A DNA stretch of 36,923 bases from Octopus bimaculoides. Lineage: Eukaryota. Where the stretch lies: assembly GCF_001194135.2 (NCBI RefSeq), contig NC_068988.1, positions 21,145,051 through 21,181,973 of the forward strand, given 5' to 3'. Of the stretch, positions 1-26,441 are shown one piece after another. The notes under the pieces are model-generated. The model made no database searches, was not told where the DNA came from, and saw only the letters and a list, made by a program, of their open reading frames with translations. Within the stretch, counting starts at the first letter, position 1. Every line of letters begins with the position of its first letter. The translations under genes were made by a program, and so were the position numbers.

Positions 1-79
1 TTCACCAGTCCTCAGTCAAATCGTCCAACCCATGCTAGCATGGAAAGCGGACGTTAAACGATGATGATGATGATACCTA

Positions 80-240
80 TACACGACGGGCTTCTTTCAG
101 TTTCCGTCTACCAAATCCACTCACAAGGCTTTGGTTGGCCCGAGGCTATAGTAGAAGACACTTGCCCAAGGTGCCACACAGTGGGACTGAGCCATGTGAT
201 TTGTAAGCAAGCTACTTACCACACAGCCACTCCTATGCCT
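80..240 (-). mobile_element. tRNA-headed CORE-type SINE, head fragment
   Basis: Reverse complement of ggagtggctgtgtggtaag...ggcaccttgggcaagtgtcttctactatagcctcgg; same family as 26279-26692. Confidence 0.85.
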
Positions 241-542
241 ATATGCACAATAGTGAGAGAGATTGAATCAGACAGGAGGAGGGGAGGAAGTGAATGCCAG
301 TAGTTATAGAAGTTATACAAACGAGAAATTTTTAATTTAAGATATTTTTCTTTTGAAACTAAATATTTATTTTATTATAAGTACCAAGAAATTTAATGAA
401 AGTTAATTTGTAATTATTGTATGTATGACATAATTCTTGTTATTACTCTTTGTGGCAAAAGTATACTCCCAAAGCTACCTGACATATGATGAGTAATACT
501 CTAATTTCATGTAGAAATTACATTCACTTATCAATATTAGGA

Positions 543-760
543 TGGTGAGTTGGCAGAAACGTTAGTACGCTGGGTGAAATGCTTAATGGTATCTCGTCTG
601 TCTTTGTGTTCTGACTTCAAATTCCACCGCGATCAACTTTGCCTTTCATTCCTTTTAGAGTCGATAAATTAAATACCAGTTGTGTACTGGGGTCGATCTA
701 ATCAACTGGCCCCCTCCCACAAAATTTCAGTCCTTGTGCTTAGAGTAGAAAAGAATATTA
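543..760 (+). mobile_element. Second SINE family (ggtgagttggcagaaacgttag head; gcctttcatcc...gtcgataaatt central domain)
   Basis: Repeated at 19508-19742 and 19752-19950 on the - strand; B-box-like gttcaaattcc. Confidence 0.8.
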
Positions 761-894
761 AATGATGTGTGGAAAAAGGGAGTTTAGTCAAATTTATTAT
801 AATTGCTCTATAAAATACAATAGAAAAAAATAGCTATAGATCTTAAAATGGAACTAACTAGAAAACAATTAGGATGTTGCCTTTTTAATATCAC

Positions 895-1165
895 TTGGGC
901 ATCTTCTATAGTCTCAGACTGAACAAAGCCTTGTAAGTGAATTTGGTTGAAGGAAACTCCGTGTGTTTTGTGCCTCCACTGACAACTGTTGTTGGTTTGT
1001 TTACATCCCTGTAACTTAGCAGTTTAGCAAAAGAGATAGAATAAGTACCAGGTTTTAAGAAAAAAATGTACTGGGGTTGATTTGTTTGATTAAAATTCTT
1101 CAAGGCAATGCCCCAGCATGGCCGCAGTCCAATGACTGAAACAAGTAAAATAAAAGATAAAAATG
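895..1165 (+). mobile_element. Degenerate CORE-type SINE body and tail
   Basis: Ends in ccagcatggccgcagtccaatgactgaaacaagtaaaa, like 26279-26692. Confidence 0.75.
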
Positions 1166-1469
1166 CCATGTTGTTTACTTAAAACTCTTGTGTATTCTGA
1201 ATGATTTGGGATTAAATAACAATGTGAGAAAAAACAGTACTGAAACCAATAAAAATTAAAAGAATCTATGCAAAACTAACAAGCAACCTGGATTGGGATT
1301 GGCTTCCAAATATGAAAGACGTAAATAGCAACAACAATTAATGAGGTCGTGAAAAATAGTCCTGTTAGTACAGGTCTCTGTTTAATAATAGAACTCAGGG
1401 TCGCTCTTAGTGTAACTTAAGAACTGTCTGTCAGTTTCACTCAACACCTTTTATGTATATATCTTTTTC

Positions 1470-1790
1470 TTGTTTCAGTCATTGGACTGTGGCCACGCTG
1501 GAACACAGCCTCAAAAGATTTTTTTTTTTTTATTGGTCTAGTACTTATTCTATCAGTCTCTTATGCTGAACCACTTAGTTATGAAGGCACGAACCAACAC
1601 TGATCGTGAAGCAGTAGTGGCAGGGAGGCACACACATGCACATATATAACAGGCTTCCACATAGTTTCCATCTACCATATTCACTCACAAGGTATTGGTA
1701 AACTCAGATCTTTGTAGGAGCCACTTGCCCAAGGTGCTGCACAATGGAACTAAACCCAAAACCACATGGTCACAAAGCAAGTTTGGTCAC
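1470..1790 (-). mobile_element. Degenerate CORE-type SINE
   Basis: ttgtttcagtcattggactgtggcc... through cacttgcccaaggtgc. Confidence 0.75.
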
Positions 1791-2010
1791 ATGTCCAAGT
1801 TTGTGCCTGTATACAGAAAAGTTCCATTAATCTGGTATCCATAGTCCAGCAAACCTATTGTTCAGCACTTTTCATTGTGCTTCACTGTTTGTTCTTTATT
1901 AAATGCCGTCACTTGCAACCAACAATACTCTTTTTATTGTTTGCATTCAAGTTAAAAAGAAAAAAAACTGTGACTAATATGTCAGTGCTTTATAAATCTT
2001 TTCTTTGTAA

Positions 2011-2248
2011 AAGAGCACCAATCGATCGTGGCCGTTGCCAGCCTCCTCTGGCCCCTGTGCTGGTGGCACATAAAAAGCACCCACTACACTCACGGAGTGG
2101 TTGGCGTTAGGAAGGGCATCCTGCTGTAGAAACAGTGCCAGATCTGACTGGAGCCTGGTGCAGCCTCCTGGCTTCCCAGACTCCAGTCAAACCGTCCAAC
2201 CCATGCTAGCATGGAAAACAGACGTTAAACGATGATGATGATGATGAT
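2011..2248 (+). mobile_element. (GAT)n-tailed SINE family with ggttggcgttaggaagggcatcc central domain
   Basis: Conserved 3' end aacccatgctagcatggaaagcggacgttaaacgatgatgat. Other copies: 1-73(+), 2655-2830(-), 3280-3592(-), 4093-4367(+), 4841-5212(+), 5685-5835(+), 12372-12497(+), 13140-13353(+), 16198-16415(-), 19090-19142(-), 20682-21040(-), 21492-22022(-). Confidence 0.9.
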
Positions 2249-4840
2249 TGTCTATCCTTTAGTGAAAATATCTTCAAATATGAGTATATTCGCTTTCCTT
2301 TCAAGCAGTTGAGAAATGTATGAAAAGAAAGTATGCAAGAAGGCATGGTTTTAGGTTCAATCTCACTGCATGGTACCTTGAGCGAGTATCTTCATCTGTA
2401 GCCCCAAGTCGATAAGTGCTGGGGGGTGATTTGTTTAACTGAACTATTTGAAGACGTACCCCAGCATGACCACAGTCCATCCAGAAATGGAAATGTGATG
2501 ATCGAAAGAGTGGAATCCTCAAGACTATTGTGCATGAATCTAACAGGTTTTTCAACAATATATGCCTTTAGCAGTTAAACCGGCCATGTCTGGTCTAAAT
2601 AGTCTACCTGTTTTAAGTTTAAACTGACCAACACTGATTGGTCAGCCCTACAATCATCATCATTTAACAGTATGGGTTGGATGGTTTGACAAGAGCTTGC
2701 TAGCCAGAAGACTGCACCAAACTTCAGTGTCTGTTTTGGCATGGTTTTTATGGCTGGATGCCCTTCCTAACACCAGCCAGCCTGCCCACACACAGAGTGG
2801 ACAGTGCTTTTTACATTGCACCAGCACATATGGGGTCAGTTTTGGCATATACAATCATATCGTAGAAATTTTGAAGCTACAAGATTATGCCTGATTAATT
2901 CAAAACAATGTGAATAAATAAGCTATAAATTGAAGAAAGAAATCTGAATGCTAAAGAATTAAGAAACGATAAAACAATTAATGCAATTTACAGCTGATTT
3001 ATTGACAATCTTTAAAAAGGAAATTCAAAACTTGCTCTGTTAAATGCCATGTTATGTAAATAGTTTGCTGCATAACAATCCAAGGTCCAATATAAATTGG
3101 AAACAATAAGCAATTACTCAAGGATCTGGGAATCTTTTCCATGAAAATCATATATAGCTATGTCTAAAGGCACATATGGCTATGTGCTTAAGCTTTCTTT
3201 GTGACCATGTGGTTTTGGGTTTAGTTCTACTGTTCAACACCTTGGGCAAGTAGCTTCTACAAAGTCTTGGGCTGACCACCATCATCATCATCGTTTAACG
3301 TCCGCTTTCCATGCTAGCATGGGTTGGACGATTTGACTGAAGACTGGTGAAACCAGATGGCTACACCAGACTCCAATCTAAGTTGGCAGAGTTTCTACAG
3401 CTGGATGCCCTTCCTAACGCCAATCATTCAGAGTGTAGTGGGTGCTTTTACGTGTCACCCGCACGAAGGCCAGTCAGGCGGTACTGGTAACGGCCACGCT
3501 CNNNNNNNNNNAACGGCCACGCTCAAAATGGTGTATTTTATGTGCCATCCGCACAAGAGCCAGTCTAGCGGCACTGGCAACGATCTCGCTCAAACGCTGA
3601 ATTTGGTTGATGGAAACTGGAAGCAGGTTAGAACTGGCAACAGGAAGGGTATTTGATCATAGAAAATCTGCTTCAACAAATTCAGTCTGACTCATGGAAA
3701 ATTGGGCGTTATGTGATGTTGTTTTCATCCTGGTCTGTTCTGATGGATTAGATCTATGATCAAAAGGCATTCTAACCATGACCATTCTGCATTGAATCTC
3801 CATTTTTAGAAATTAGGACCATAAGGAACTTTTGGCAGCTTGGAATGAGGATCAAGCCCACCAGTTTCAGTGTTACTTAACAAGTCATCAACATCTCACA
3901 TGTTTCTCCCAAACTATTGATGGCTTCTTCAATAAATGTAAACAAAATATAGGCATGAGCATGGCTGTGAGGTAAGAAGTTTCAGATTCAGTCTCTGAGT
4001 GGCACCTTTGGCATGTGTCTTCTATAACCCCAGGCTAACCAAAGCCTTGTCAGTAGATGAGAACTGAAAAAACCCATTTTATATCATCCAAATGTGGTCG
4101 ATGCCAGCCCCCTTGTCCCGACTGGCTCCTGTGCCGGTGGCACATGAAAAGCACTGTCCGAACGTGGCGGATACCAGTGCCAGTGGAACATAAAAAGCAC
4201 CCGGTACACTCGGAGTGGTTGGCGTTAGGAAGGGCCTCCAGCTGTAGCAAAACACTGCCAGATCATATTGGAGCCTGGTTCAGCCTCCAGGCTTCCCAGA
4301 CCCTCAGTCGAACCATCCAACCATCCAACCCATGCCAGCATGGAAAACGGACGTTAAACTATGAGGATTTTATATATGTATATATATGCACACACACACA
4401 CATTCATGTGTGTGTTACTGTCTTCTTGCCTAGACTTCACATGATAGTTGTAAACGAGTGTTTCCATCATGCATGCAGTGTCCTGTTTCCAATTTTTCAT
4501 GAAAACATGTCTGGTCTTGGAGAAATAATATCTTCGCGACAGGTGAGTGTTGGCGGCAGGAAGGGCATCTGACCATAGAAAAATCTGCCTTCACAAATTA
4601 AGTGCAAACATGGAAAAGTGGACATTAAAACAATGATAATTAAAAAAATTCATGACTGGCACAATTCATAGGATACCAATGTTGTGTAGGTTATTGTTAA
4701 TATATAGAAACAAGACTATATTTTACTGTGAAGTTAGGTGTTAGGACTTTTTATGTAATTGATATATTTGTGAGAAATAGCAGTCAAATCTCTTTCCGTT
4801 TGTATCTACCACCTTAAAATGGATACATTGGTTAGAGTGA

Positions 4841-5212
4841 AAAGTACCATGTGAGCGTGATCGTTACCAGTGTTGCCTTACTGGCACTTGTGCCGGTGGT
4901 ACGTGGAAAACAACATTCGAGCGAGGGTGATGCCAGTACCGCTGGACTGGCTCCTGTGAAGGTGACACGTAAAAACACCATGTGAGCGTGGCCTTTGCCA
5001 GTACTGCTTGACTGGCCCTCGTGCCGGTGGCATGTAAAAGCACCCTCTACACTCTGGGAGTGGTTGACTTTAGGAAGGGCATCCAGCTGTAGAAACTTTA
5101 CCAGATCAGATTGGAGCCTGGTGCAGCCATCTGGCTCACCAGTCCCCAGTCAAACCATCCAACCCATGCCAGCATGGAAAGCGGACGTTAAACGATGATT
5201 ATGATGAAGATG
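4841..5212 (+). mobile_element. (GAT)n-tailed SINE copy with three tandem ~60-nt internal modules
   Basis: Three repeats of ...ccagt(N8)actgg...gtgccggtggca.gtaaaa.cacc upstream of the aggaagggcatcc domain. Confidence 0.85.
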
Positions 5213-5505
5213 CTTGAAAAGAATATGGGTGTAGCTTGAATGAATTTGACTACTTATTTCCCTTCTTACTTAGGGTTTACCTGGGGTTAAATACCAATAT
5301 CAATAATCTTATTGTAGTAGCAGTACTTTGGTGTTCTCTGTTCTACTAATTCTATTAATAATTATTTGCTAGCATACATTCGGTTATCGGTGAAAGAGTT
5401 AGTGTACATTTCTATAATTAGTGCTATTACTATGATACATATCTTTGCTGTTTTACTTTCTTAGCATGTAATTTGTGTAATTAATCTTTTATTTATTTAT
5501 TGCAG

Positions 5506-5608
5506 GTTGATGAAGATTATATTCAAGACAAATTCAACTTAACAGGTCTCAATGAACAAGTCCCTCATTATAGACAGGCTCTGGATATGATATTAGACCT
5601 CGAGCCAG
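5506..5608 (+). CDS. CSNK2B: CK2-beta coding exon (equivalent to human exon 3), 103 nt, phase 0 to phase 1
   Basis: ttattgcag|GTTGATGAA...GAGCCAG|gtactc; encodes [34 protein letters not shown], including the destruction-box-like RQALDMILD. Confidence 0.97.
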
Positions 5609-8600
5609 GTACTCAATCTATTGGCTTTTGTCTTGGTTCTTAATTTAAAAAATTTTTTTTTCCATGAGACACATCCATTATACTCTTGGAATGGTTGGTG
5701 TTAGGAAGGGCATCCAACCAGAGAAACCATGCCAAACCAAACTGGAACTTAGTGCAGCTCTCTGGCTTACCAGTTTCAGTCGAACTGTCCAACCCATGCC
5801 AGCATGGAAGCAGACACTAAATGATGATGATGACTATGACCAAATGATCAAGCTATTCAATTAGGTGCACTTGGGGATGTGAATGACTTTGTGGTTAAGA
5901 AGTTCCCAGTTCAATCCCTCTGCACAGTACATTGGACAAGTGGCTTTTTCTATAGCCTTGAGTTGTTCCAAGCCTTGTCAGTGAAATTCAATAGAACTAA
6001 TTCATCTCCCTGTTTCACCCTCTATTACCTTTTCATCTACTATGTTGTAAACATTCAGTTAAGGTCTCCAATCTGAAGATAACACATGGGTACCTCCTTT
6101 GCCAGTTTTGGAAACCCTGCAAAAATTTCATGAGTGCTACCTTGCTATGCTTTAAACTTTTAAAATGTTACTTATTTTTGTTGTGTTTTGTATCAAAACC
6201 CTTCTACTTTATTGTGACACAGTTAAGCTTACAGCTGAGGATAAGTATCAGATCATTCTGATCAAAGTTTGATCTGAACTCTTTGACTACAGACTCTGTA
6301 TGTGGTGACTAGTATATACAACAGCTTGTTAAAGATTCAGCTCATTGCATTAAGACCATTCAATATCATGGAATACTTTTGACCATGAGACATTGTAAAG
6401 AAACAGATATTATAACTGGAGATGAAAATTCATCTGGTTGTTCAGTTTGAACTTTGAGCAAGAATAATGAGGTTTCTCTAAATCAGAGAAATTAGAAATT
6501 AGTTGCTAATTAGATTAAAAATATTAAAAGCATCAGCTGCAATAGAGATGCAATTTTCAATATCGTTTTAACCTCCACTTTTCTATACTTGCATGGGGCA
6601 GATGTAACTTGTTTGAGGTAGATTTTCTGTGGCCAAATGCTCTTCCTGTTACCAACACTCTTCTGTTTTCGAGGAAAGTAACATTTTTCCCATCTTGCTT
6701 TCAACATTGAACAACTCTATGGCTTGGCATGTTTACTTGGATATATTGTAAACAAATGATGCCTTTTTTTTCAATTAGTGTATACCTGTTAAGACAAGGG
6801 GGAGACACTCATAAGTACAGATGTATATGGAATGGGCTTCTCACTGTTTCCATCTACCAACTTCACTCACAATGCTTGATTAACCCATGTCTGTAGAAAA
6901 CACTGACAGTACCCACACAGTGGGAATGAACAGTTAAATGTATTTTGCTTCTTAACCATATAGCCATGCCAGCATTTATTCCTGTTGTATAAAAATATAT
7001 CATTACAGTTGACTGGTTATTAGTAAAACCAGTAGCTTTTGGTGAGATCAAAACAGTTCCTTGCTAGTATTAATCTAATAAATTTGATGTCTCTGTAAAT
7101 GTCAATCATTAAATATTTGTGTTTAGGAGATCATTTTACAGTGGTTTGCAGATTGTATTATTTTGTTGTGATGGCTTTCTTGTGACATCAGTCAGCATTT
7201 CTCTCACAGATAAACTGTTGTAATATTTGCACTTTTTAGCTTGCATAAGAAATTAGCAGAGATTGTTGCATTCCTAATTCACTTCAGCACAGCAGATCTT
7301 GGATGTGATAATGCACAAAGCTTTTACATTAGTTTCAAATGCAGTCCATTTTCATGAGAAACATGTCGCTTTGCATTCGGAAAGAACATGAAAATATAGT
7401 TGAGACGTTTTGAATATATTTCCAAGTGTTTGTGAAGTTATAGTATAGAAGGGAGGTAACTTTTTTTCAGTGTCGCTGTATGCATATATGGGTGGACAAA
7501 CGTGCTTTGTCCATAGTTTAGAATTTGTTTGCACCTCCAAACAGTCATCCTAATGTTAGAAAGGACCAAGAGTCCTGTTCATAGCATCAGAACTTGCTTC
7601 CTTGTTTTAGAAAAAAAAGACATTCAGGGAAAAGTAAAAGAGAGAATAGAGTAGTTGCTGTTTAACTCCATATCAACCTTCATGCAGCGGAATGGACATA
7701 AATTTCAATGTTATGTAAACACTCGAAAGAAATATGAAGATAAGGTAGAAGTATATCAGATAAACTAGATTACCTAAGTACAGATAGGCTATATATAGTC
7801 AAAAAAAAAAGAAAAAGAAGGTAGCTGCTTTAGATTCTATATCATATGGCTACCTTCACAAATTTAGACAGTGTATACTCCTTCACTAACACAAATGTAC
7901 TAACTGAAAGACATAGGTAAGTTTTCTATGACTGTCATGTTCTTAATTGCAAAGCAAATGAAAATGTGAAAGTTTTCAGAACTAATTTTTACTGAAATTG
8001 TATTGTGATTGTATATGTTCTAATTTAAGTGTGACTGCTGGCTGTTAATAGCTTGTGTAAACTCTATTATCACATTGTATCTGTCCAAGCTTCTTCACTG
8101 TGAAGATCTGTTTTCTTGTGTTAGACGATGATGGGGATGACTGCGTTAATAAAGACCAGCTGGAGCAGGCTGCTGACATGCTTTATGGACTGATTCATGC
8201 TAGATATATCCTAACAAATGCTGGTCTCAGTACTATGGTAAGAATTTGTCTGCTTCCTGCCATGACCCTGTCTGATGGAATGTTCATTTTGTTTTCAAAA
8301 GAAATTTGTTGTTCTTGTCTCACACCTTGCATATGACATTCTCAATTTGAACTGCCTTCAAGTGTGTTTGTTTTTCTGTCTGACTTTAATATTTGTTTCA
8401 TGAAAAGAGAGGGGGGGAAATCTGAAGATAATATTTTAGGACGGCTAAATTTTACTGCTGTCTTTAGGCTGAAATAGAATATATTTTAGTGTTTCATATT
8501 TATATAATTTATTGCATTGCATCTGAAATGAAGGGTTTGCCTCTAGCTTATGATGAGTTAGAACCATCAATCAAGATCTATGAAATTGATGCAGGTGATA

Positions 8601-11600
8601 CGGTGCTTCAGCAGTTAGCAGTTAGGATATTGTGGAATTATGTAGCAGATGAATACATATTCTAAGGAAGTGGCATTTTCTATGACACGCATATTTTCCT
8701 TAGCAAAAGGATTCTAATAGTCTGAGAAAATTGAAGATGTTTGATTAACTAACCAATTGCAAGATCTTAAAGCCATTTGAATTTTAAATACTTGCTTCCC
8801 AACCACATGCTTATGAATTCAGTCCCATTGCATGGCACCTTGGGCAAGTGTTCTGGGCCAACCAAAGCCTTATCAGTGGATTTGGTAGATGGAAACTGAA
8901 GGGAACCCATTGTATATATATGTATATGCGTTGTTGTATGTAGGTGTTGAAGATGCAACAACTGAAGATTTTTCGATCTTGATAACATAGGGAACTTACG
9001 TACTGTAGAAGAAAGCAAATGAAGACCAGAAGTACAGGACCGCAGTAAATGATTGATTAGAAATGTGATTACATGTGCCCTTGCCTTGACATTGTGTGGT
9101 AGTTGTAGATGAATGTCACTGTCATTGCAAGCAGTGTCATTCTCTAAAAACATGTCTTGCTTGGAAATGGGTGAGAATTAGTGGCCAACAGACCATCTTG
9201 CTGTAGAACACCTGCTTCAATAAACTCCATGCATGCATGGAAAAGAGAGGGGGTGGAGTTAAAATGATTATGATGATGTAAATTTAGTAACTAGGTATAA
9301 GAAGTATGGATAATACATTAACTAACTTATAACTGATCAACTGATTAGACAATTACTTAGTCCTGAGAATCTTGAATGTCATATGCTGCAATTCAATATA
9401 TTTTATTGCCATTAGAGGCATGGCTTTTTTTATATAGAGAATTTAGATATGATTAAAGGAGTTGTGCATTTTCTCCTCCCGCAATTTCTGGTTATAATTT
9501 TTGTAGTGGTGTTTTGTTTTTTTTTTGTTTTTTTTTAAATATGAATTTTGCAAGTTTGCATCCGTTTCCAAAATTCTTTTTTCTTTTTTTGCTGTTTTAT
9601 TTTTATTACACATACACAGAGACACACACACACACACACACACAGTAATTCCTTTCTGCAGGGTTTGTTGATCGGAACTGGTTGGGCGAGAGTTGATGGC
9701 TGTAAATGATTTATCTTTATACAGATGATGAACTTGAAGATAATCCAAACCAAAGTGATTTGATTGAGCAAGCTGCTGAGATGCTGTATGGTTTGATCCA
9801 TGCACGCTACATAATGACAAATAGGGGCATAGCTCAAATGGTAAGCTTAGCCGTTAACCAGCTTTTTTATTTTCTATTGCTGTTCTATTTAAAATACATT
9901 TTCAGATTTAGCTTAAGGCTTCCCCCTAGTGTGTAGCGTCGTATTCACACATTTAATTCTCTTTAGGATCGTTTAAAGACGGTTGGGAATGGAATGTTAA
10001 TATTAACAGTTTCTTTAACCCATTAGCATTTAAACCAGCTATGTCTGGCTTAAATATTCTACCTGTTTTATGTTCAGACCAAACAGATCCAGCCTCTCAC
10101 ATCTACCTGACGATGTTGTTCTGAAACTAAATAATCATATCATCGAAATCTGAGCTATGAGATAATGCATGATTAATTCAAAACAATGTCATTGGATAAG
10201 TGTTACATTTGACAGAGTAATCTGAATGCTGATGGGTTAAAATTATCATCTCCTGTTGTTTGAATATGAATTTTTATCAGAATTAATTATGGGTTTAAAT
10301 TTTGAAGATATTCTGTCTCAAACAACCTAGTTATCTTTTCATCAGTTAGTAAAACTTCATCTAGCAATGGGAGTAAATATCTAAGCGTACAGCTGCATCC
10401 ATTCTAGTATGATCAGGTATTTGTAATGGGTTTGTTAGCTTGGTTTGGCTACATGATTGCTGTATTTTATTTCTGCTTACTAAACCATCATTTTAACCTT
10501 TTTTAAGTTCTGTGGTTTATTCCTGTTTTCTTACACCCAATAAATCCCAACTACGGTACTAACTGTCTCCACTCTTATATCTTAATTAAATCTTTAGTTC
10601 ATTTAGGGCATGCCAAAAATTAGCAAAATACTTCTTACTGCTTCAATTTTTGTGAATATTTGAAAAAAACTATTTTATCAAATGTTAATAAATGCTGTTG
10701 GAAATGTCTTTGTAAATATCTTAAGCAAAAATTGACAATAGAATTGTAAAAATGCATTTATAGAATGGACCTGTTTCAACAGAGGGTTTCCTATAATGAT
10801 TATTTGATTTGCTGCATATAGCAGCCAAATTTCTCTAACATTACACCTTACAGTCTTGGAAAAGAAAAGAACACATTGGATAATGAAGTCCTACATATCC
10901 TTAAACCATTGGTATGATCATGGTTGAATGCCTTTCACTATAGGTCTACTTGATCAAAGCACAGGCCAAATGGATAAAAAGTTCACATCGCCTTCCATAT
11001 TAATTTTCTACAAGGCATGCTAGGCAAGTTGTTTTCTATGATAGCTGTGAGTCACTTTAGACCTTAAGTGAGTTGAAGTAGTCAAATGACTGAAACTAGT
11101 AAAAGTATATTACTTTCTTATGGTAAACATTATCCAAAATGTACTTTAGACGTATTGATATTACTGTTGATTTAGCCCTTAGAGAAATCTCTTCTTAATC
11201 TTACATGCTAGCAAGATCCTGGGCCAACTCTTGCTGCATCAGCTCATAGGAAATGTGTAGGTATGTGAGGAATGATTAATAATTTCTCATGCTAAAGTCT
11301 CTGGAAAATTTGGTTTCCAAGCATGAAGCGAAGTGCATTTTAATCCAGTGTGAATCAAAAGCAATTGTTCAGTTTATTTCTATTATCATCAATAACATGC
11401 CTTTAAAATGAGTCTTGCAGGATTTAGTTCCATCCTTATACAATCTTGCTGTTGTTGATTTAAACATGCACCTGTTAACTACTGGGGTTGATTTGACTGT
11501 ACTCTTTCCCCTCAATTTGTAGCTATGCAACTATAATTAGTGTGATATAAACATTTATTCTAAATATAGGATAATGGTTACTACACACTTGTAAATAGAT

Positions 11601-14495
11601 TTATGCATTCCTTAAACTCAATTTTTTAAATTTATATTCTTTGTTTTATGTTTGCCTGCAGTAAAATGTTTGGAACACAATTATTATATGATATGTAGCT
11701 TTAGAAAACTTGCTTTACTGCAGAAACAAATACACTGAAATTCTAATTCAGCATCTAAATTAGTATAAAATAATTATAAACCTCTATTATAAGAATATAG
11801 ACAACTATAGAATTAAACTACTGTTTAGAAGTGGTCTGCAGTGAATTAGAACTGTAGTATAACCATTTGATTTATGAAACAAATATTGCCACCTAGCAGT
11901 ACATCACCTGTATTTCATAAAGACATTGTTGTTTTGACAGATTGAAAAATGGCAGCAAGGTGACTTTGGTTACTGTCCTCGGGTTTATTGTGAGAACCAA
12001 CCCATGCTACCTATTGGTAAGTTTGCTGATTAAGTTCTCATGTCAGTCCTCATCGAATAGTTGAGTTGCGAAAGTGTTGCTGTCATGAATTGAAACACCA
12101 TTACTGATTTTGCATGCTTATGGTTGAGGTATATTTTTATTTTTCACCTCTTAAAACATTACCTAGAAGCCAATACCAGTCCATCGTCCAGTTTATCACC
12201 ATCACTTAGCACCTGAAAGTGGGAGCTTGGAAAACGGTCATTGATATTTCCCTTCTCTGACTAAGCTTCTGGGGTGGGGGGGACCGTTGATTAGAAAAAC
12301 TAATTTGCAAGGATTCATATTCTACATATCCTAATACATTTGTATTCAGTACATTTTCTAATTAGGGAATCTAGCTGTAGAAACTCTGCCAGATCAGATT
12401 GGAGCCTGGTGCAGCCTTCTGGCTTGCCAGTCCTCAGCCAAATCGTCCAACCCATGCTAGCATGGAAAGCGGACGTTAAACAATGATGATGATGATGAAA
12501 TGGTAACTTGAAATGTTCATGCCTTTTCTCAGCTCATAAGTAATCTAAATGGAATAGCTACTTTTCAAATGGATTATAGGCTTGGCCCAGCAGGAGCTCT
12601 GTTTCATGTGTACACACTCTAGTTAAAATGAATGAGATAGTTATATAAAAATGACTGCTCAAACAATTCACTGTCCCTTTTATGTATTTATGAAAGCAAG
12701 TGTTAAAGAAAGAACGAAGTGAATTTATTAAAAGTGTTGTTAATTTATTAAAAATTTCTTAACATTGAATTTGGATAGTCAGATTAACTATGACTATGTT
12801 AGTTATGTTTTTTAACTGAGTGTTTACTGCTTAGCTGACATGTTGCTGAGGGACTGACTAAGAGATAATTCATTGTCTAGTGGCCACTGGTAGGCTGACA
12901 GCTTAATGAACTGGCTAAGTGAACCTGGATCGTTTATGCATAGTGAAAACCTTATGCTGAGTGCTCATGGAGTTTATTTGAAAGGTTTAATGGTTGTGTA
13001 TTTTGTTAAGTGTAGGAATGTCTATGACCGGTTTATTCATAAAATTTGTAAGTTTAAATTTTACTTTGTCAAACTTGTTGCTGAAAACTAGTGTGTGACT
13101 TTACAGAGTTGTCTTTAAAAAAGCAGTATTGTATTGCTGTTGCCAGTACCGCCTGACTGGCCTTCGTGCGGGTGACACGTAAAAGCACCCACTACACTCT
13201 CTGAGTGGTTGGCGTTAGGAAGGGCATCCAGCTGTAGAAACTCTGCAAAATCAGATTGGAGCCTGGTGTTGCCATCCGGTTTCACCAGTCCTCAGTCAAA
13301 TCGTCCAACCCATGCTAGCATGGAAAGCGGACGTTAAACGATGATGATGATGAGCCCTTAAAAGAAAAAAAGGTTAAATATTTTCTTATTCTTGTGAGTT
13401 TTATTTTTTCATTCTAAACCGATAATTATTTTGTTGTTATTGCTTAGGCATGTACAGTATGAAGAATCATTTTTTTTCTTCTTTTCTGAATACTGCAACT
13501 ATTTAAGTTATTCCCCTTGTGTATTTAACAGGTCTCACTGATGTACCTGGTGAAGCAATGGTGAAGCTGTACTGTCCAAAATGCCAAGATGTTTACACAC
13601 CTAAGTCTTCTCGTCATCACCACACGGATGGAGCATATTTTGGCTCTGGTTTCCCACACATGTTGTTCATGGTCCATCCAGAATACAGACCTAAGCGTCC
13701 TGCAAACCAGTTTATTCCAAGGTAGAGTGCTGATTGCTTTTCACCAGCAATAATCTGACAGTAGGGAATCTGTGTGTGTGTATGTATATATATATATATA
13801 TATACTCTTTTACTCTTTTACTTGTTTCAGTCATTTGACTGCGGCCATGCTGGAGCACCGCCTTTAGTTGAATCAAATCGACCCCAGGACTTATTCTTTG
13901 TAAGCCTAGTACTTATTCTATCAGGTCACTTTTTGCCGAACCGCTAAGTTATGGGGATGTGAACACACCAGCATCGGTTGTCAAGTGATGCTGGGGGGTG
14001 GGACAAACACATACATATATATACATATATACGATGGACTTCTTCCAGTTTCCGTCTACCAAATCCACTCACAAGGCTTTGGTCGGCCCGAGGCTATAGT
14101 AGAAGACACTTGCCCAAGGTGCCACGCAGTGGGACTGAACCCGGAACCATGTGGTTGGTAAGCAAGCTACTTACCACACAGCCACTCCTGCGCCTATATA
14201 TATATATATATATGTATATTTTTTCGCTTGTTCCAGTCATTTGACTGCAGCCATGCAGGAGCACTGTCTCCTAGTTGAATAAATTGAGCCCAGGACATAC
14301 TCTTTGTGAGCCTAGTACTTATTCTGTTGGGCTCTTCTGCGAAACTGTTAAGTTACGAGGATGTAAACTCACCAACATTGGTTGTCAAGCGATGGTGGAG
14401 AACAAACACACACGTGCATGTGTGTGTGTGTTCCCCCACCATTGCTTGACAACTGATGTTGGTGTGTTTACATCCTGATAGCTTAGTGGTCTCTT

Positions 14496-14559
<64 letters not shown>

Positions 14560-17227
14560 AGTTGTATACTGCCAACTTAACGTGACAGTCCCAATAAGGG
14601 AATATACTACTGTTGTTTAACCCTAGGAAGCCAGACTGCTTCCTATTAGGCCTTGACACAATTTCTGTGCCCTTATCCATACAAGGGGGAGACAAACTCC
14701 TCCAACCAGCCCAGCCTGCATTCAGGGACATGTTTCTGAGTCTTTGCTCGTCATCAGCCTGAAGTAGCACGGCAGGCTAGCTGAAGAAATCTATCTAAGC
14801 TTTGTATGGATATACTATTTCAGTGAAATACTATTCACTGGTAAATATATACATACATACATACACACGACAGGCTTTCAGTTTCTGTCTACCAAATCCA
14901 CTCACAAGGCTTGAGGCTATAGTAGAAGACACTTGCCCATGGTGCCAAGCAGTGGGACTGACCCAGAACCATGTGGTTGGGAAGCAAGCTTCTTTATTTC
15001 ATATATATTGGCCATTAAGGCCTTACAAAGAGGGGACGAACAAGGACAGACAGACATAAAGAAGCTGCGGGCTGGACATAGACATTAATGAGATGGTGAT
15101 AACAAAAAGAATGAAATAGAAATGGGAGGGGCGCCGGCGCCCACCGACCAATGACCCTTGAAAACCTTGTTCAGTACAATTCATTAATTCATTATTATAA
15201 ATCATTATAGCAAACTTCCTACCACACCTGTCCCTATACATAAATATAAATTCTATGTAATTGCAATCCTTACTGTCATCAGAACTCTATGAATAGTTTT
15301 TGTTTTAATGGTTTCAATTATGTAACAACCAACCAGTTACTTGGGCTAAAGATATGTTACTAGTTCACAGGGACTTCAACATTTTGTGGCCATATCTCTA
15401 ATGAAATACACAGCTTGTGTGTTTGTTTATTTCAAAAACAATTGAGAATTTAGGATTTGCTGAAACGATTGGTTCATTGTCAAGCTAGTGTTAAGAAAAT
15501 GATTTAACAAAAAGGTTCTAGCATATTAAGATGGAAGGTTTATTTTGAAATATAAGCATTTTAGATGTTGTGTACCAAAGACTCAGAAGTGGTATGGAAG
15601 GGAGTTAAACCATTTCATTACTATATTTCTGTGCTTAAATTAAATATGGACTGCTTTCATAAGACAACTTTTTCATTTATCAAAATATATAAAAATGATA
15701 TTTGGAACACAGCTAAAGTTTTTACATATATCTATTATGGAATTTTTGTCTCAGACTACTTTAATTACAGATAAGTACAAGAAAATTAGTGAACCATTAG
15801 TTATACTCTTTTACTTGTTGCAGTCATTCGATTGTGGCCATGCTGGAGCACCGCCTTTAGTCGAGCAAATCGACCCCAGGACTTATTCTTTGTAAGCCTA
15901 GTACTTATTCTATTGGTCTCTTTTGCCGAACCGCTAAGTTGCGGGGACGTAAACACACCAGCATCGGTTGTCAAGCGATGTTGCGGGGACAAACATATAC
16001 ACACACATACATATATATACGACGGGCTTCTTTTAGTTTCCGTCTACCAAATCCACTGACAAGGCTTTGGTCAGCCTGAAGCTAGCACTTGCCCAAGGTG
16101 CTACACAGTAGGACTGAACCCGGAACCATGTGGTTGGTAAGCAAGCGACTAACCGCACAGCCACTCCTGCGCATATATTATTGAAACCTTTTTAAATATC
16201 ATCATCATCATCATCGTTTAACGTCCGCTTTCCATGCTAGCATGGGTTGGACGATTTGACTGAGGACTGGCAAGCCAGAAGGCTGCACCAGGCTCCAATC
16301 TGATTTGGCAGAGTTTCTATAGCTGGATGCCCTTCCTAACGCCAACGACTCCGAGAGTGTAGTGGGTGCTTTTATGTGCCACCTGCACGGGAGCCAGTCT
16401 AGCGGCACTGGCATGACATAAAATTATTTCTCTGGCTACATTATTTAGTTTATTAAATGCTTTTATTTATTGCAAAAATGCTCTTAATTCCCTTCATTTT
16501 GTAATTCATTTTTGCTGTTATATATGACTTGGAGTGAAATTAATAAGCAAATAGTGCAAATTGCTTTAAAGCACAGCCTTTCTGGCCAATATCTCCTTAG
16601 AAGTTTCAAATCTCAGGTTAATTCAAGTTAGAAATTCTACCACTTCAACTTTAATCACAGGAATGATTCGGTTCGGTTTCTTGAGAAAAAGAAATAGATC
16701 TTCACTTTTGCTTACATTGTCCAGCTTCTTTAAACCCTAGAAATTCAAGCAAGTGGTAGAATTTCTCGCTCTTTCCTCTTGCCTTTAGCAGCTCACCTGC
16801 GACGGTCCGTCACCCTGTCCAGGTGGGGAACCTATACACCAATGAAACCAAGAAACCTGCCCTTATGAGCCGAGCATGGCTCGAGAAGGAACAAACAACA
16901 ATGAAAATAGAAGGAAGGTGTTCTTGAGAAGGAACTGATGGTACATGTATTTTTTTAAATGCTTTGAATTCTTAGTATGAGAGTTTAAAGGAAGTTACAA
17001 GACTATTCTTGAAGTATTTGTTTTGGGTTTTTTTTGTTTGTCTAAAACCCTTGAGTCTGCTGTAGCAGTCTGTATTCATCTGATTATCTTTTAATCTCGC
17101 ATTCATATATATTTTCAGATTATATGGTTTCAAGATTCACCCATTAGCATATCAACTCCAGTATCAGGCTGCTGCCAATTTCAAAATGCCCATTAGGGGA
17201 ATGGGACACAGTAATAGCAAAAGGTAG
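5506..17227 (+). CDS. CSNK2B: Casein kinase II subunit beta, multi-exon CDS, 5'-partial (first coding exon MSSSEE...FFCE not found in window)
   Basis: Manual splicing gives [197 protein letters not shown]. This is near-identical to metazoan CK2-beta. All introns are GT-AG with matching phases. Confidence 0.98.
6570..6900 (-). mobile_element. Old composite SINE (CORE-type head plus aggaagggcat/GAT-type tail)
   Basis: Reverse complement contains ttggtagatggaaac and gttggtaacaggaagagcatttggccacagaaaatctacctc. Confidence 0.6.
8125..8237 (+). CDS. CSNK2B: CK2-beta variant exon 4a (duplicated, diverged), 113 nt, phase 1 to phase 0
   Basis: ttttcttgtgttag|ACGATGATGGG...AGTACTATG|gtaaga; open frame (D)[37 protein letters not shown]; about 24 of 38 aa identical to exon 4b. 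Confidence 0.85.
8790..9280 (+). mobile_element. Old composite SINE (CORE-type head, (TA)n, GAT-type tail) between exons 4a and 4b
   Basis: ggcaccttgggcaagtg...gatttggtagatggaaactgaa, then catgcatggaaaag...gttaaaatgattatgatgatg. Confidence 0.65.
9725..9840 (+). CDS. CSNK2B: CK2-beta canonical exon 4b (equivalent to human exon 4), 116 nt, phase 1 to phase 0
   Basis: tttatacag|ATGATGAACTT...GCTCAAATG|gtaagc; encodes (D)[38 protein letters not shown]. Confidence 0.97.
10015..10240. mobile_element. piggyBac-like MITE with TTAA ends
   Basis: ttaa|cccattagcatt ... aatgctgatggg|ttaa (TIR 15/16 including TTAA). Related copies at ~2565-2962 and ~21285-21490 are interrupted or truncated by GAT-SINEs. 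Confidence 0.75.
11941..12016 (+). CDS. CSNK2B: CK2-beta exon 5, 76 nt, first half of zinc finger (CPRVYC)
   Basis: gttttgacag|ATTGAAAAATGG...CCTATTG|gtaagt; encodes [25 protein letters not shown]. Confidence 0.97.
13140..13353 (+). mobile_element. (GAT)n-tailed SINE, young copy
   Basis: Close to family consensus; 3' end identical to window bases 1-73. Confidence 0.9.
13532..13721 (+). CDS. CSNK2B: CK2-beta exon 6, 190 nt, second half of zinc finger (CPKC) and [10 protein letters not shown] motif
   Basis: tttaacag|GTCTCACTGAT...ATTCCAAG|gtagag; overlaps ORF-track 13519..13725. Confidence 0.97.
13803..14195 (-). mobile_element. Full-length CORE-type SINE with internal (TA/CA)n tract
   Basis: Reverse complement of head aggcgcaggagtggctgtgtggtaag through tail gactgaaacaagtaaaagagtaaaagagta. 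Confidence 0.9.
14220..14490 (-). mobile_element. Tail half of CORE-type SINE (degenerate)
   Basis: cttgttccagtcatttgactgcagccatgc...gttgtcaagcgatggtgg. Confidence 0.7.
14505..14555. repeat. (ATCT)n(TA)n compound microsatellite
   Basis: Directly visible; many similar TA/CA/TG/ATCT tracts occur elsewhere (e.g. 9623-9644, 26441-26480, 31129-31180, 36636-36675). Confidence 0.95.
14718..14768 (-). ncRNA. Minimal type I hammerhead ribozyme motif in a probable Penelope-like element fragment (~14560-14800)
   Basis: - strand: UUCAGG-CUGAUGA-C-GAG(CAAAGA)CUC-A-GAAA-C-AU-G-UC^-CCUGAA; 6-bp stem I, complete core, GUC cleavage triplet. Confidence 0.7.
15803..16172 (-). mobile_element. Full-length CORE-type SINE
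   Basis: Same structure as 13803-14195. Confidence 0.9.
16198..16415 (-). mobile_element. (GAT)n-tailed SINE
   Basis: atcatcatcatcgtttaacgtccgctttccatgctagcatggg... Confidence 0.9.
17119..17227 (+). CDS. CSNK2B: CK2-beta last coding exon, to TAG at 17225-17227
   Basis: attttcag|ATTATATGGTTTC...; encodes (R)[35 protein letters not shown], the CK2-alpha-binding tail. Confidence 0.92.
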
Positions 17228-17379
17228 GCTACTGTGTCAACCACAAGTGCCGACTCTGAGCAGACCAGCTGTCAGTTCCTGTAAAAAAAGAAAAAAAAAA
17301 ATTGTATCTTTGTTACTGACAAAAACTCTTCCTGTCTCTTTTATTTTTTTTTTCTCCCCCTTTTTTTTTATATATATAG

Positions 17380-17392
17380 CAATCAGTTCTGA
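17380..17392 (+). CDS. CSNK2B: Candidate alternative terminal coding exon (…SK-S-N-Q-F*), reached by a 156-nt intron 17224-17379
   Basis: Donor AAG|gtaggc overlaps the stop codon. A long polypyrimidine tract (17325-17370) followed by tatatag| forms an acceptor. No transcript evidence. Confidence 0.45.
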
Positions 17393-18349
17393 AATGTCAT
17401 CTAGCTGCAACCATTTGTAGTTAACCTGCTGTTACTATGGAAATTCCAGCTGGTTTTTTTTCTGTAATCTGCACGTGGAAGTGTTTCAAAAGATGGACAA
17501 ACAACTACTTTGGAAGTGGAAGGAAAAGCAAATACCATTCTGATACCTATAGTAATTATTCTGGAGACTGTTTTCTCATGTTTCTCTGGTTTTCTGACTG
17601 AAATCATAAACTGTATTAAATTGTTTTGATATTTTTTGCATCTCTCCTTAATGCTTAAGACAATTATTAGCATTGAAAATGAAGAAATCAGACGGAGAAT
17701 GGAAATGACAAATATTACATTGGTGTGTGTGTCTGTGATATACACGCTATTTTAATAGCTACAATCAGCGTTATTATCCACCATCACTGAGTCATTGGTG
17801 ATCTGTACAGCTTGTACAGAACAACTGCTGGGTCTATCAAGTGCTGAGCAAATCTTAACCCTTCCATAGTGTTTGTTAATCACCTGATCTTGACTCTGTA
17901 TACTGTGAATATATGCAACATTTACTTTATACAATTTCTCCCTAAGTAATAGAAAAATTTTATTTTTAATTTAAATTTTATTTCACTGACTGACTTCATC
18001 TGGTTTCTGTTTTAGATAAAGGGGTGGGGGGTTTTTTTTTGTCTTTTTTTCTCTCTTCTCACTGGCCCTTTCATCATTACTACCTCCATCCCCCTCATCA
18101 TCAAATGTAAACACACCCAAATGACTTAATACATACAATATAAAGCAAACTAAATTTTTCTTTCTAACTTATTTTTCCCATCAAAACTAATAACAATGGA
18201 TGTTAGACCACAAGGAGATCTAACTCAATTACAGTTTTATATAAATGAATATATATAGATATGAAATTCACGTCTTCTCTTTCCTCCAAATTAATTTCAC
18301 TCACGTTTTCCTTGTTAGAAAGCTTGCGGTGACTGTATATTTATGCATC

Positions 18350-20681: not shown

Positions 20682-21040
20682 TCATCATCATCATCATCGC
20701 TTCACGTTCGCTTTCCATGCTAGCATGGGTTGGACAATTTGACTGAGGACTGGTGAACCGGATGGCTGCACCACAGGCTCCAATCTGATTTGGCAGAGTT
20801 TCTACAGCTGGATGCCCTTCCTAATGCCAACCACTCCGAGAGTGTAGTAGGTGCTTTTCCGTGCCACCGGCNNNNNNNNNNGATGCCCTTCCTAATGCCA
20901 ACCACTCCGAGAGTGTAGTAGGTGCTTTTCCGTGCCACCGGCACGAAGGCCAGTCAGGCAGTACTGGCAACGGCCACGCTCAAAATGGAGTTTTTTGATG
21001 TGCCACCTGCACAGGAGCCAGTCCAGCAGTACTGGCAACG
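20682..21040 (-). mobile_element. (GAT)n-tailed SINE spanning a 10-N join
   Basis: Family sequence; a 60-nt block is duplicated on both sides of the N run. Confidence 0.85.
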
Positions 21041-21491: not shown

Positions 21492-22022
21492 ATCATCATT
21501 GTCAGCGTTTAACGTCTGCTTTCCATGCTAGCATGGGTTAGGCGATTTGACTGAGGACTGGCGAACCAGATGGCTGCACCAGGCTCCAATCTGATCTAGC
21601 AGAGTTTCTACAGCTGGATGCCCTTCCTAACGCCAACCACTCAGTGGGTGCTTTTACATGCCACTGGCACGAGGACCAGTCAGGCAGTACTGGCAACGGC
21701 CATGCTCAAGTGGTGTTTTTTACGTGCTACCTGCACAGGAGCCAGTTCAGCAGCACTGGCAATGACCTCGCGCGAATGTTTTTTCACGTGCCAGGAAGGT
21801 GACGCTGGTAACAATCACACTCGGCTGGTGCTTTTTATGTGCCACCGGCAACGAAGCCAGTTAGCTGCTCTGGCAGTAATCACGGTCAGATGGTGCTCTT
21901 AGCGCTCTACTGGCATGGGTGCCAGTCATCGAATTTGTGAACTAGATTTGATTTCGAATTCACTTGCCTCAACAGGCCTTCACAAGCAGAGTTTAGTGTC
22001 CAATGAAGGAAAGGTAAGCATA
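21492..22022 (-). mobile_element. Longest (GAT)n-tailed SINE copy, with about five internal modules
   Basis: Tail at 21492-21540; modules 21648-21935; additional 5' sequence to ~22020. Confidence 0.8.
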
Positions 22023-26278: not shown

Positions 26279-26441
26279 AGGCGCAGGAGTGGCTGTGTGG
26301 TAAGTAGCTTGCTTACCAACCACATGGTTCCGGGTTCAGTCCTACTGTGTGGCACCTTGGTCAGGTGTCTTCTACTATAGCCTCGGGCTGACCAATGCCT
26401 TGTGAGTGGATTTGGTAGACGAAACTGAAAGAAGCCCGTCG

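Follow-up and report, generated by a model that had tools for sequence, protein, structure and literature searches.

Gene structure and the two copies of exon 4

The window, the whole stretch of 36,923 nucleotides of Octopus bimaculoides DNA that was analyzed, matches chromosome CM046608.1 of that species at 100% identity and carries a CK2-beta gene on its forward strand; the first coding exon is absent from the window and is placed upstream of it (Table 1). Two copies of exon 4, here termed 4a and 4b, lie in tandem between constitutive exons 3 and 5. Querying the window with human CK2-beta (tblastn) returned exactly two exon 4 copies, matching human residues 59–98 with E values of 1.5e-10 (4a) and 5e-21 (4b); these values indicate that the matches are not due to chance. 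Exon 4a is bordered by ...ttcttgtgttag/ACGATGATGGGG...AGTACTATG/gtaagaat and exon 4b by ...tctttatacag/ATGATGAACTTG...GCTCAAATG/gtaagctt (slashes mark exon boundaries), and both copies have usable splice sites: pyrimidine-rich sequence leads into each AG acceptor, and each donor reads GTAAG.

Table 1. Coding exons and conserved segments of the CK2-beta locus, in window coordinates
Feature	Coordinates	Strand	Remarks
Constitutive exon 3, 5' of pair	5506..5608	+	34 residues and first base (G) of next codon; acceptor ttgcag, donor gtactc
O. bimaculoides/O. sinensis zero-difference block	7971..8333	+	exon 4a with ~150 nt 5' and 96 nt 3'
Argonauta hians-alignable island, 4a	8070..8295	+	87% identity; 55 nt of 5' and 58 nt of 3' intron
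Exon 4a, divergent alternative copy (113 nt)	8125..8237	+	38 residues; used in XP_036361111.1 (O. sinensis)
4a–4b intron (1487 nt)	8238..9724	+	T-rich tract and (CA)n run at about 9500–9645
Argonauta-alignable island, 4b	9682..9909	+	88% identity; 43 nt 5' and 69 nt 3'
Exon 4b, canonical copy (116 nt)	9725..9840	+	39 residues
Constitutive exon 5, 3' of pair	11941..12016	+	25 residues and G
Constitutive exon after exon 5	13532..13721	+	second half of zinc finger, KSSRHHH, helix F
Last coding exon	17119..17227	+	TAG stop at 17225–17227

Exon 4b matches the human exon at 38 of 39 residues, the single change being Leu89 to Met, and its amino acids are identical in Argonauta, scallops, Sinanodonta, and a gastropod-like mollusc genome (L011); the amino acids of exon 3 are likewise 100% identical in Argonauta, scallops, and L011. 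Exon 4a is homologous to 4b, sharing 23 of 37 aligned residues, and 13 of these 23 are encoded by different codons. An earlier note on this DNA had described the two homologous exons, with open frames, equal phases, AG acceptors, and GTAAG donors on both, and each of these observations was confirmed; the two peptides, read from the G that exon 3 contributes, are exactly as it gave them, and the four junctions that it named (5608–8125, 8237–11941, 5608–9725, and 9840–11941) are all correct as coordinates. Its count of 8 synonymously differing codons in a shared block of 11 residues was reproduced, and its proposal of an old duplication under purifying selection is supported by synonymous divergence between the copies that has reached saturation (pS 0.90, pN 0.26) and by the intact frame and splice sites of 4a in four octopod genomes.

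Splicing, usage, and conservation of exon 4a

Exons 4a and 4b both start in phase 1 and end in phase 0, and transcripts joining exons 3-4a-5 or 3-4b-5 each translate through to the normal C-terminus. Since the two lengths are both 2 mod 3, transcripts that include or skip both copies hit an early stop, located 17 codons into 4b when the two are joined and immediately 3' of exon 3 when neither is used. The frame is kept solely by transcripts containing exactly one of the two, and both-in and both-out transcripts would be expected to undergo removal by nonsense-mediated decay.

The 4a isoform is already present in RefSeq as a predicted protein, XP_036361111.1, casein kinase II subunit beta isoform X2 of O. 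sinensis. In that species isoforms X1 and X3 contain 4b, while X2 contains 4a in place of 4b and not together with it; both O. bimaculoides isoforms (X1 and X2) contain 4b. The 4a isoform of the window is listed at 100% identity to XP_036361111.1 (P0122) over a 220-aa query, the first 24 residues of which were taken from the conserved N-terminus. The 4a peptide itself is exact; elsewhere, a single substitution (Thr for Ser, AYFG[ST]GFPH) and an alternative N-terminal extension set XP_036361111.1 apart. Mutually exclusive use of the pair, as the earlier note proposed, is supported by the reading frame as well as by O. sinensis isoforms with either 4b or 4a. Gene structure, frame logic, conservation, and the database isoform are demonstrated directly, and splicing ratios, decay, tissue specificity, and biochemical effect are inferred; we consider it likely that 4a and 4b of O. 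bimaculoides CK2-beta are a tandem-duplicated, mutually exclusive pair with the products and usage described here.

A 12-member protein cluster comprises eleven 4b proteins and one 4a protein (the model). The protein collection held no full-length 4a product from transcriptome assemblies, the assembled full-length transcripts being 4b only, and a 75-aa protein query centered on 4a returned no 4a-like match among the best 120 listed, only short canonical fragments, a weak negative as candidates were apparently length-limited. A search with the genomic ORF through 4a returned one match, on another octopus genomic contig. The RefSeq X2 model is the sole expression evidence for 4a, and its transcript support is assumed from NCBI Gnomon variant building. 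Minor, regulated use of exon 4a is probable, because the assemblies contain 4b only and because its synonymous sites are frozen, the intron sequence flanking it is conserved, and its amino acids change faster, as detailed below. These latter features are typical of regulated alternative exons; low synonymous together with raised replacement rates were reportedly described by Xing and Lee in 2005 as a signature of minor-form alternative coding exons. Annotation of the locus is incomplete, as O. bimaculoides, scallops, and Argonauta have no annotated 4a-type isoform.

Within octopods, exon 4a is identical at 113 of 113 nucleotides in three Octopus-type genomes (O. bimaculoides, O. sinensis, and a contig of SRR11869391), and O. 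sinensis, SRR11869391, and Argonauta all retain its AG and GTAAG sites. The zero-difference run that contains it (360–363 nt) is the longest in the 7.1-kb alignment from exon 3 to exon 5 of O. bimaculoides and O. sinensis; the next longest, at 4b, reaches 128 nt, against a median run length of 12 nt. Introns of these two species are 84–92% identical (gaps counted), with ~5.5% of aligned sites mismatched, a rate at which the chance of zero differences is ~4e-8 for 300 nt and ~0.002 for exon 4a alone. Introns of Argonauta hians are otherwise unalignable, with 4a and ~55 nt on each side among seven conserved islands; here too, frame, AG acceptor, and GTAAG donor are all kept.

Between Octopus and Argonauta, exon 4a differs by seven amino acid changes, six within the N-terminal 15 residues and the seventh A33V (human position 92). 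All seven are nonsynonymous and fall at codon positions 1 or 2, none at the third; synonymous sites of 4a are unchanged (0/~24), as compared with 36/76 changed in the constitutive exons. A pattern of exclusively nonsynonymous change is unlike ordinary coding constraint, and the RNA sequence itself may be under selection. The comparison of 4a orthologues for which the earlier note had called gives, for Argonauta, a pN of 0.08, or an omega of roughly 0.1 with constitutive-exon synonymous divergence as the yardstick, and the stops and frameshifts named there as refuting evidence occur in none of four octopod genomes. Neither do lost splice sites or divergence at a neutral rate, the other marks expected of a decayed pseudo-exon.

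This conservation bears on whether 4a might act mainly as a regulatory "poison" exon, with inclusion alongside 4b leading to nonsense-mediated decay that tunes CK2-beta levels and with the 4a-only protein as a by-product. The zero-difference block, the unchanged synonymous sites with all changes at codon positions 1 or 2, the stop 17 codons into 4b on joint inclusion, and the lack of an assembled full-length 4a transcript in the collection are all in keeping with such a role. However, the use of different codons for 13 identical residues and the excess of pS over pN between the copies reflect long-term constraint on the protein, and the buried core residues of 4a are intact in all octopods examined. 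Furthermore, the RefSeq model has 4a replacing 4b rather than accompanying it, the scallop copies described below show ordinary synonymous change with few replacements, and the combination of low synonymous and raised replacement rates would also fit a minor-form coding exon; a mainly regulatory role is accordingly improbable. That 4a is a nonfunctional leftover of duplication, and its RefSeq isoform splicing noise or an annotation artefact, is far less credible still and close to refuted by conservation: though a single predicted protein carries 4a, none of the O. bimaculoides RefSeq proteins does, and 4a alters residues (E77, R92, and I94) that are at least 90% conserved across animals, its open frame and splice sites persist in four octopod genomes, including Argonauta with its otherwise unalignable introns, and its complete identity in three Octopus-type genomes has the low neutral probabilities given above for the exon and the surrounding 300 nt.

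Mutually exclusive coding use of 4a and 4b has known parallels. Tandem duplicated exon substitution events have been catalogued in human, fly, and worm genes (PMC9741552, PMC8373072, PMC9013439), and the pairs resemble 4a/4b in that two homologous exons lie side by side with nearly the same length and the same phase, in combining one conservative and one divergent copy of old origin with conserved intron flanks, and in keeping buried residues while altering surface residues; unlike in those pairs, the exclusivity of 4a/4b is explicable by frame alone. CSNK2B is not mentioned in the main text of the paper that catalogues human genes. In docking site/selector systems such as Dscam exon 6 and 14-3-3 zeta, RNA structure selects the exon (PMC6071210), and as in 4a/4b one of several tandem homologous exons is chosen. 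In contrast to these systems, 4a/4b has no excess folding energy, and its sole candidate pairing is not conserved: folds of 4a and 4b with their conserved flanks are not unusually stable (z 0.47 and 0.18), and an inverted repeat that could loop out 4b (8388–8404 with 11871–11887) is weaker in O. sinensis and missing from Argonauta. Exon choice by RNA structure was therefore set aside, as was steric exclusion via a distant branch point of the OGDH type (PMC7969005), the 4a–4b intron being full of AG dinucleotides.

The literature searched contained no report of a mutually exclusive CK2-beta exon pair in any animal, nothing relevant on cephalopod mutually exclusive exons or octopus casein kinase splicing, and no paper or functional study of XP_036361111.1. 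The earlier note knew of no described pair at this position, which holds for this literature but not for the databases, where the 4a isoform stands as a predicted protein of a sister species.

Exon 4 copies in other molluscs

Comparison of mollusc genomes indicates that the duplication is not octopus-specific. Three scallop genomes contain an in-phase, divergent copy 5' of the canonical exon, with AG and GT sites present; these copies are 131–140 nt long with a poly-Glu start, and their pN/pS of about 0.05–0.2 reflects ordinary synonymous change with few replacements. The gastropod-like L011 carries a 113-nt in-phase copy, also 5' of the canonical exon. A 256-aa gene model suggests a second exon 4 copy in Nucella as well; on this reading, the model mistakenly joins the two copies within a single protein. 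A single exon 4 is present in Lottia, the oyster Crassostrea virginica, and the unionid Sinanodonta woodiana. The near-invariant Arg92 is replaced in every upstream copy.

Repeated duplication of exon 4, independent in octopods, the gastropod-like genome, and scallops and without a single ancient molluscan event, is a serious possibility, though we stop short of calling it probable. The patchy distribution, with three single-copy genomes, points in this direction, as do the greater length and poly-Glu start of the scallop copies. Upstream copies share 15–17 of 28 residues between classes, as compared with 17–23 of 28 with the canonical exon; the pattern of closest similarity to the canonical copy has one narrow exception, Octopus 4a matching the L011 copy at 21/28 and the canonical exon at 20/28. 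Additionally, the 3' portion of this exon is repeated locally in tandem in an unrelated genomic ORF (P0269). However, this identity matrix would also result if the copies had diverged in star-like fashion from a canonical-like ancestor, and the divergent copy lies 5' of the canonical one in all three lineages. The octopod 4a and L011 copies are both 113 nt long, shorter by one codon within the same segment, and both encode Ala (GCT) at position 92, and the same positions are altered across copies, 92 and 94–96 in all of them and 72 and 77 in those of octopods and scallops only.

More doubtful, in our assessment, is that the upstream exon was a single molluscan invention, by our own estimate >500 million years old, inherited by cephalopods, gastropods, and pectinid bivalves with several later losses and marked by replacement of Arg92 and its neighbors. 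If so, molluscs would possess a second, regulated form of the CK2 regulatory subunit in which self-inhibition or the docking of partners is altered, and the frozen synonymous sites of octopods would additionally reflect an RNA-level control element.

The exchanged protein segment and its significance

Few animal proteins are as conserved as CK2-beta. CK2 is commonly regarded as a constitutively active kinase. We know of no internal CK2-beta isoforms in vertebrates. The segment encoded by 4a or 4b corresponds to human residues 59–97, that is, the second half of the acidic loop (55–70), helix alpha-D, which contains Glu77 and Arg86, and the turn to the next helix. The 4b product is canonical CK2-beta. 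Exon 4a retains a 12-residue core block ending at position 90, N91, G93, M97, and the acidic run DDDGDD; CVNK replaces NPNQS, making it one residue shorter, and further substitutions are L71Q, I72L, E77D, M89L (Leu being the human residue), R92A, I94L, A95S, and Q96T. Apart from the acidic run, the residues kept are buried core, and the altered positions are surface. The acidic-loop and groove surface damps kinase activity, binds polyamines and polybasic partners, and mediates tetramer–tetramer contacts. Described regions of CK2-beta include the acidic loop, Glu77 in alpha-D, a surface cluster at Arg86, the zinc finger (106–146), and the CK2-alpha interface (164–170 and 186–198) (PMC9608649).

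Both the zinc-finger dimer interface (CPRVYC, CPKC) and the CK2-alpha-binding tail are encoded by constitutive exons. The 4a isoform (P0122) matches Pfam PF01214 (CK_II_beta) end to end (1.1e-76, profile positions 1–182/182) and its alignment to human CK2-beta chain 1jwh_C (3.8e-135) has a single one-residue gap, inside 4a; an AlphaFold2 model built from a 41-sequence alignment was of too low quality to compare structures (mean pLDDT 48.5). A 4a subunit would presumably still dimerize and build holoenzyme, and would expose a changed acidic-loop and groove surface. The location of the dimer interface in constitutive exons is compatible with the mixed 4a/4b beta dimers that the earlier note suggested; Drosophila CK2-beta and CK2-beta', however, form no mixed dimers in S2 cells (PMC5374408).

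Drosophila CkIIbeta has C-terminal splice variants (VIIa–d) and the paralogues CK2-beta', Stellate, and SSL, which have non-redundant functions and differ in features that include how acidic the acidic micro-domain is (PMC5374408). Molluscs would resemble Drosophila in having several CK2 regulatory subunits in one lineage. However, the Drosophila splice variants differ in the last 15–20 residues only, and acidic-region variants are separate genes; the molluscan arrangement is instead an internal exon swap in a single gene, covering the end of the acidic loop, helix alpha-D, and the following turn.

The 4a/4b pair is a further example of a well-known type of splicing event. The swap represents a natural, conserved experiment on the role of this CK2-beta surface: part of the acidic loop, the beginning of alpha-D, and the Arg92 turn are altered, and the regions for dimerization and alpha binding stay as they are. 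The extra exon in octopods, scallops, and a gastropod-like genome is either an overlooked ancient molluscan isoform or the repeated evolution of the same solution, and both alternatives are relevant to research on exon duplication.

Structure of the exon pair

Both copies of exon 4 in the octopus CK2-beta gene (CSNK2B), the divergent upstream copy (4a) and the canonical copy (4b), lie between constitutive exons 3 and 5, each preceded by a pyrimidine-rich tract and AG and followed by GTAAG; the first codon of each starts with a single G supplied by exon 3, and each finishes on a whole codon. These splice sites and identical phases are as described in the earlier note, whose quoted translations match the window sequence exactly and whose count of synonymous differences in the shared 11-residue block (8 of 11 codons) is confirmed. 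Across the pair as a whole, the two copies agree at 23 of 37 residues, with different codons at 13 of the 23, and pS reaches 0.90 as compared with a pN of 0.26. By this pattern the duplication is old, as proposed in the earlier note, and 4a was protein-constrained for most of its history.

Both exon lengths leave a remainder of 2 when divided by three, so that the use of one copy or the other is enforced at the protein level by frame alone. Joins of exon 3 to exon 5 through either copy stay open to the normal C-terminus; inclusion of both places a stop 17 codons into 4b, and omission of both results in an immediate stop. Both-in and both-out transcripts would presumably be removed by nonsense-mediated decay. 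The mutual exclusivity claimed for the pair is thereby borne out, in that the frame permits exactly one copy per intact protein. These data point to 4a and 4b as true tandem duplicates within the CK2-beta gene, mutually exclusive by reading frame and conserved octopod-wide; the pair is one further case of a well-known kind of splicing event.

Window bases 1-18227 match O. bimaculoides chromosome CM046608.1 (GCA_001194135.2) at 100% identity. Mapping by tblastn with human CK2-beta against the window recovered exon 4 in two copies only. The first coding exon was searched for in the window and not found; the O. sinensis locus and the O. bimaculoides record place it upstream of the window start. 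Also outside the window is an alternative 5' end (O. sinensis locus L001, 10104-10190; P0246 and P0247), in which MW(K/R)QIFGSD precedes the usual MSSSEE start; isoform X1 of both O. bimaculoides and O. sinensis begins in this way, as does X2 of O. sinensis. Downstream of the gene, two ORFs match reverse transcriptase (RVT_1; 1.3e-09 and 0.0023) and mark a retrotransposon fragment. Many copies of a short interspersed repeat (~170-230 nt) occur, in both orientations, in the window and across the O. sinensis locus.

Coordinates of features in the window and in the compared molluscan loci
Feature	Sequence	Position	Strand	Remarks
CK2-beta exon 3	window	5506-5608	+	tblastn with human CK2-beta
CK2-beta exon 4a	window	8125-8237	+	tblastn with human CK2-beta; 113 nt
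CK2-beta exon 4b	window	9725-9840	+	tblastn with human CK2-beta; 116 nt
CK2-beta exon 5	window	11941-12016	+	tblastn with human CK2-beta
CK2-beta exon 6	window	13532-13721	+	tblastn with human CK2-beta
CK2-beta last coding exon	window	17119-17227	+	TAG stop 17225-17227
Short interspersed repeat	window	5048-5210, 13193-13353, 16205-16417, 20688-20871, 21496-21727, others	both	
Second repeat family	window	13798-14189, 15803-16172, 26280-26692		
RVT_1 ORFs	window	29096-30232		flanking N gaps 30284-30949
T-rich tract and (CA)n run	window	9500-9645		~80-220 nt upstream of 4b acceptor
Exon 4a	Argonauta hians (L002)	7961-8073		
Exon 4b	Argonauta hians (L002)	9692-9808		
Upstream copy	Mizuhopecten yessoensis (L006)			137 nt
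Upstream copy	scallop GCA_041381155.1 (L007)			140 nt
Upstream copy	scallop GCA_902652985.1 (L008)			131 nt
Exon 3	gastropod-like contig (L011)	1412-1513		
Upstream copy	gastropod-like contig (L011)	2388-2500		113 nt; AG acceptor, GTAGGT donor
Canonical exon	gastropod-like contig (L011)	5228-5344		
CBFD_NFYB_HMF gene	O. sinensis (L001)	1-1805		
CBFD_NFYB_HMF gene	Lottia (L005)	1-768		
CBFD_NFYB_HMF gene	Mizuhopecten yessoensis (L006)	1-1461		
CBFD_NFYB_HMF gene	scallop (L007)	1-762		
CBFD_NFYB_HMF gene	scallop (L008)	1-216		

Conservation and database isoform of exon 4a in octopods

Exon 4a does not differ between O. bimaculoides and O. sinensis at any of its 113 nt, and is enclosed by a perfect-identity block (window 7971-8333, 360-363 nt) that is by far the longest between exons 3 and 5. 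The next-longest perfect run in this interval, at 4b, is 128 nt and the median run 12 nt; intron segments are identical in 84-92% of aligned columns, with ~5.5% of aligned sites mismatched. A third octopus genome (Logan contig SRR11869391) carries a 4a identical at 113/113 positions, with AG and GTAAG kept and more diverged flanks. Introns cannot be aligned between Octopus and Argonauta hians; seven islands remain, namely 4a and each of the six canonical-transcript coding exons that fall in the window, and only 4a and 4b have conserved intron flanks (~45-70 nt on both sides). The length of Argonauta 4a (113 nt), its acceptor (ttgtgttag), and its donor (gtaagaattTG) are all as in Octopus.

Nei-Gojobori counts between Octopus and Argonauta give synonymous changes at 11 of 19.5 sites in exon 3, 4 of 15 in exon 5, and 21 of 41.5 in exon 6 (36/76 in all), with 0, 1, and 2 nonsynonymous changes, respectively. 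Synonymous sites are nearly frozen in both 4b (2/21.7, with 0 nonsynonymous changes) and 4a (0/23.8, with seven); the probability of the 4a value at the constitutive rate is ~2e-7. Six of the seven 4a replacements are among the first 15 residues; the remaining one is A33V, at human position 92. Checked for stops, frameshifts, and a dN/dS near 1, the 4a orthologues were found to keep frame and splice sites, with an omega of roughly 0.1 when the gene's own synonymous divergence is the yardstick. At this value 4a is under constraint, though a looser one than 4b. Xing and Lee (2005) reportedly described the combination of low Ks and raised Ka as a signature of minor-form alternative exons.

The frozen synonymous sites, together with the restriction of all 7/7 replacements to codon positions 1 or 2, leave room for an RNA-level role of the 4a nucleotide sequence. 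Folding of the exon pair found no special RNA structure that would account for the frozen sites; RNA editing and dense splicing signals are candidate causes. CA repeats can serve as splicing regulators, and a long T-rich tract with a (CA)n run precedes 4b in the window; O. sinensis has the tract too, with a CA run that is shorter and interrupted, and both are absent from Argonauta.

The earlier note knew of no described pair at this position. This holds for the literature searched, in which no description of the pair was found (the main text of a human tandem exon substitution catalogue does not name CSNK2B), but not for databases, where the 4a isoform is already predicted. The window's 4a isoform, its first 24 residues filled in from the conserved N-terminus, matches RefSeq XP_036361111.1 (casein kinase II subunit beta isoform X2, Octopus sinensis) at a listed 100% identity; the 4a peptides are identical, and one Ser/Thr difference lies elsewhere. 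Because Gnomon, the NCBI gene-prediction pipeline, builds alternative variants from transcript alignments, this computational model would imply some RNA support. The other 11 of the 12 members of its 90% cluster all contain 4b (including O. bimaculoides X1 and X2, O. sinensis X1 and X3, O. vulgaris, Argonauta, and four transcript-derived sequences). No assembled full-length 4a transcript occurs among the cluster members, which suggests a minor or tissue-restricted form.

Upstream copies in other molluscs

Scans of the intron between exon 3 and canonical exon 4 in other molluscs had a divided outcome: upstream copies are present in three scallops, and none was found in this intron in Sinanodonta woodiana, Crassostrea virginica, or Lottia gigantea (where it is only ~136 nt). 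Each scallop copy is in the same phase and lies between an AG acceptor and a GT donor; a very acidic, Glu-rich start leads into a common core ending (Q/P)G(M/L)T(I/V)M. Across this core the three scallops show pS of 0.19-0.35 and pN of 0.015-0.053, a pattern of plain coding constraint. When the 38-residue 4a peptide was searched against 1.84 billion representative proteins, one further kind of match was returned, genomic ORF P0272; it occurs in 13 Logan contigs that derive from several SRA runs, and the gastropod-like L011 has an upstream copy between exon 3 and the canonical exon. The L011 copy resembles a partial second copy in the Nucella lapillus model KAL8561188.1 (P0124). Outside octopods, pairs comparable to 4a/4b are present in scallops and in at least one mollusc of gastropod-like type.

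In that Nucella model (256 aa), a portion of the upstream copy is linked to the canonical exon by SSDGLLCVCV within a single protein, most likely an annotation error from the duplicated exon. In a 111-aa genomic ORF (P0269), an exon 4 of canonical lophotrochozoan type has its last third repeated in tandem three or four times behind it (VGLIHAIYIMTNQGIAQM...), either a local micro-duplication at exon 4 or an assembly artefact. In O. sinensis, Lottia, and the three scallops, the upstream neighbour of CK2-beta is a histone-fold gene (CBFD_NFYB_HMF) in head-to-head orientation, a neighbourhood conserved across molluscan classes. In oyster isoform X2 (C. virginica P0266, locus L009; Magallana gigas P0239), the C-terminal tail after ...RPANQFV is replaced by a cysteine-rich Ly6/QVR-like domain (weak PF17064 match) and a hydrophobic end; this form would be without the CK2-alpha-binding segment, and is either an unusual isoform or a model produced by read-through or fusion.

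The upstream copies may descend from one origin or from several; comparison between classes rests on 28 alignable residues. The divergent copy is upstream in every lineage, and the octopod and L011 copies share both their length and Ala (GCT) at human position 92, consistent with a single origin. Likewise, Arg92 is replaced in all upstream copies (A, V, A, P, Q, Q), positions 94-96 are also changed, and positions 72 and 77 are changed in octopod and scallop copies; across 41 aligned animal sequences, Arg92, Glu77, and Ile94 are each conserved at 90% or more. The patchy distribution and the longer scallop exons are consistent with several origins, as is the closer resemblance of each upstream copy to the canonical exon than to other classes' upstream copies, with the narrow exception of Octopus 4a, which matches L011 at 21/28 residues but the canonical exon at 20.

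Predicted properties of the 4a subunit

Drosophila reaches comparable CK2-beta diversity by another route, with splice variants of the C-terminus and with paralogues encoded by separate genes, the latter differing in the acidic micro-domain (PMC5374408). Exon 4 encodes residues 59-97 (human numbering). The acidic loop (55-70) extends as an acidic groove, with the beginning of helix alpha-D forming part of it; Glu77 lies in alpha-D, Arg86 in a conserved surface cluster, and the zinc finger (106-146) and alpha interfaces (164-170 and 186-198) are located elsewhere (PMC9608649). The 4a isoform has a full-length match to Pfam CK_II_beta, and aligns to the human CK2-beta of holoenzyme structures with one 1-residue gap, inside 4a. 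In 4a no buried residue is changed, nor is Arg86 or the acidic run, and surface residues are altered on both helix sides; from this we infer that the 4a subunit would assemble normally but show altered regulatory or docking behaviour.
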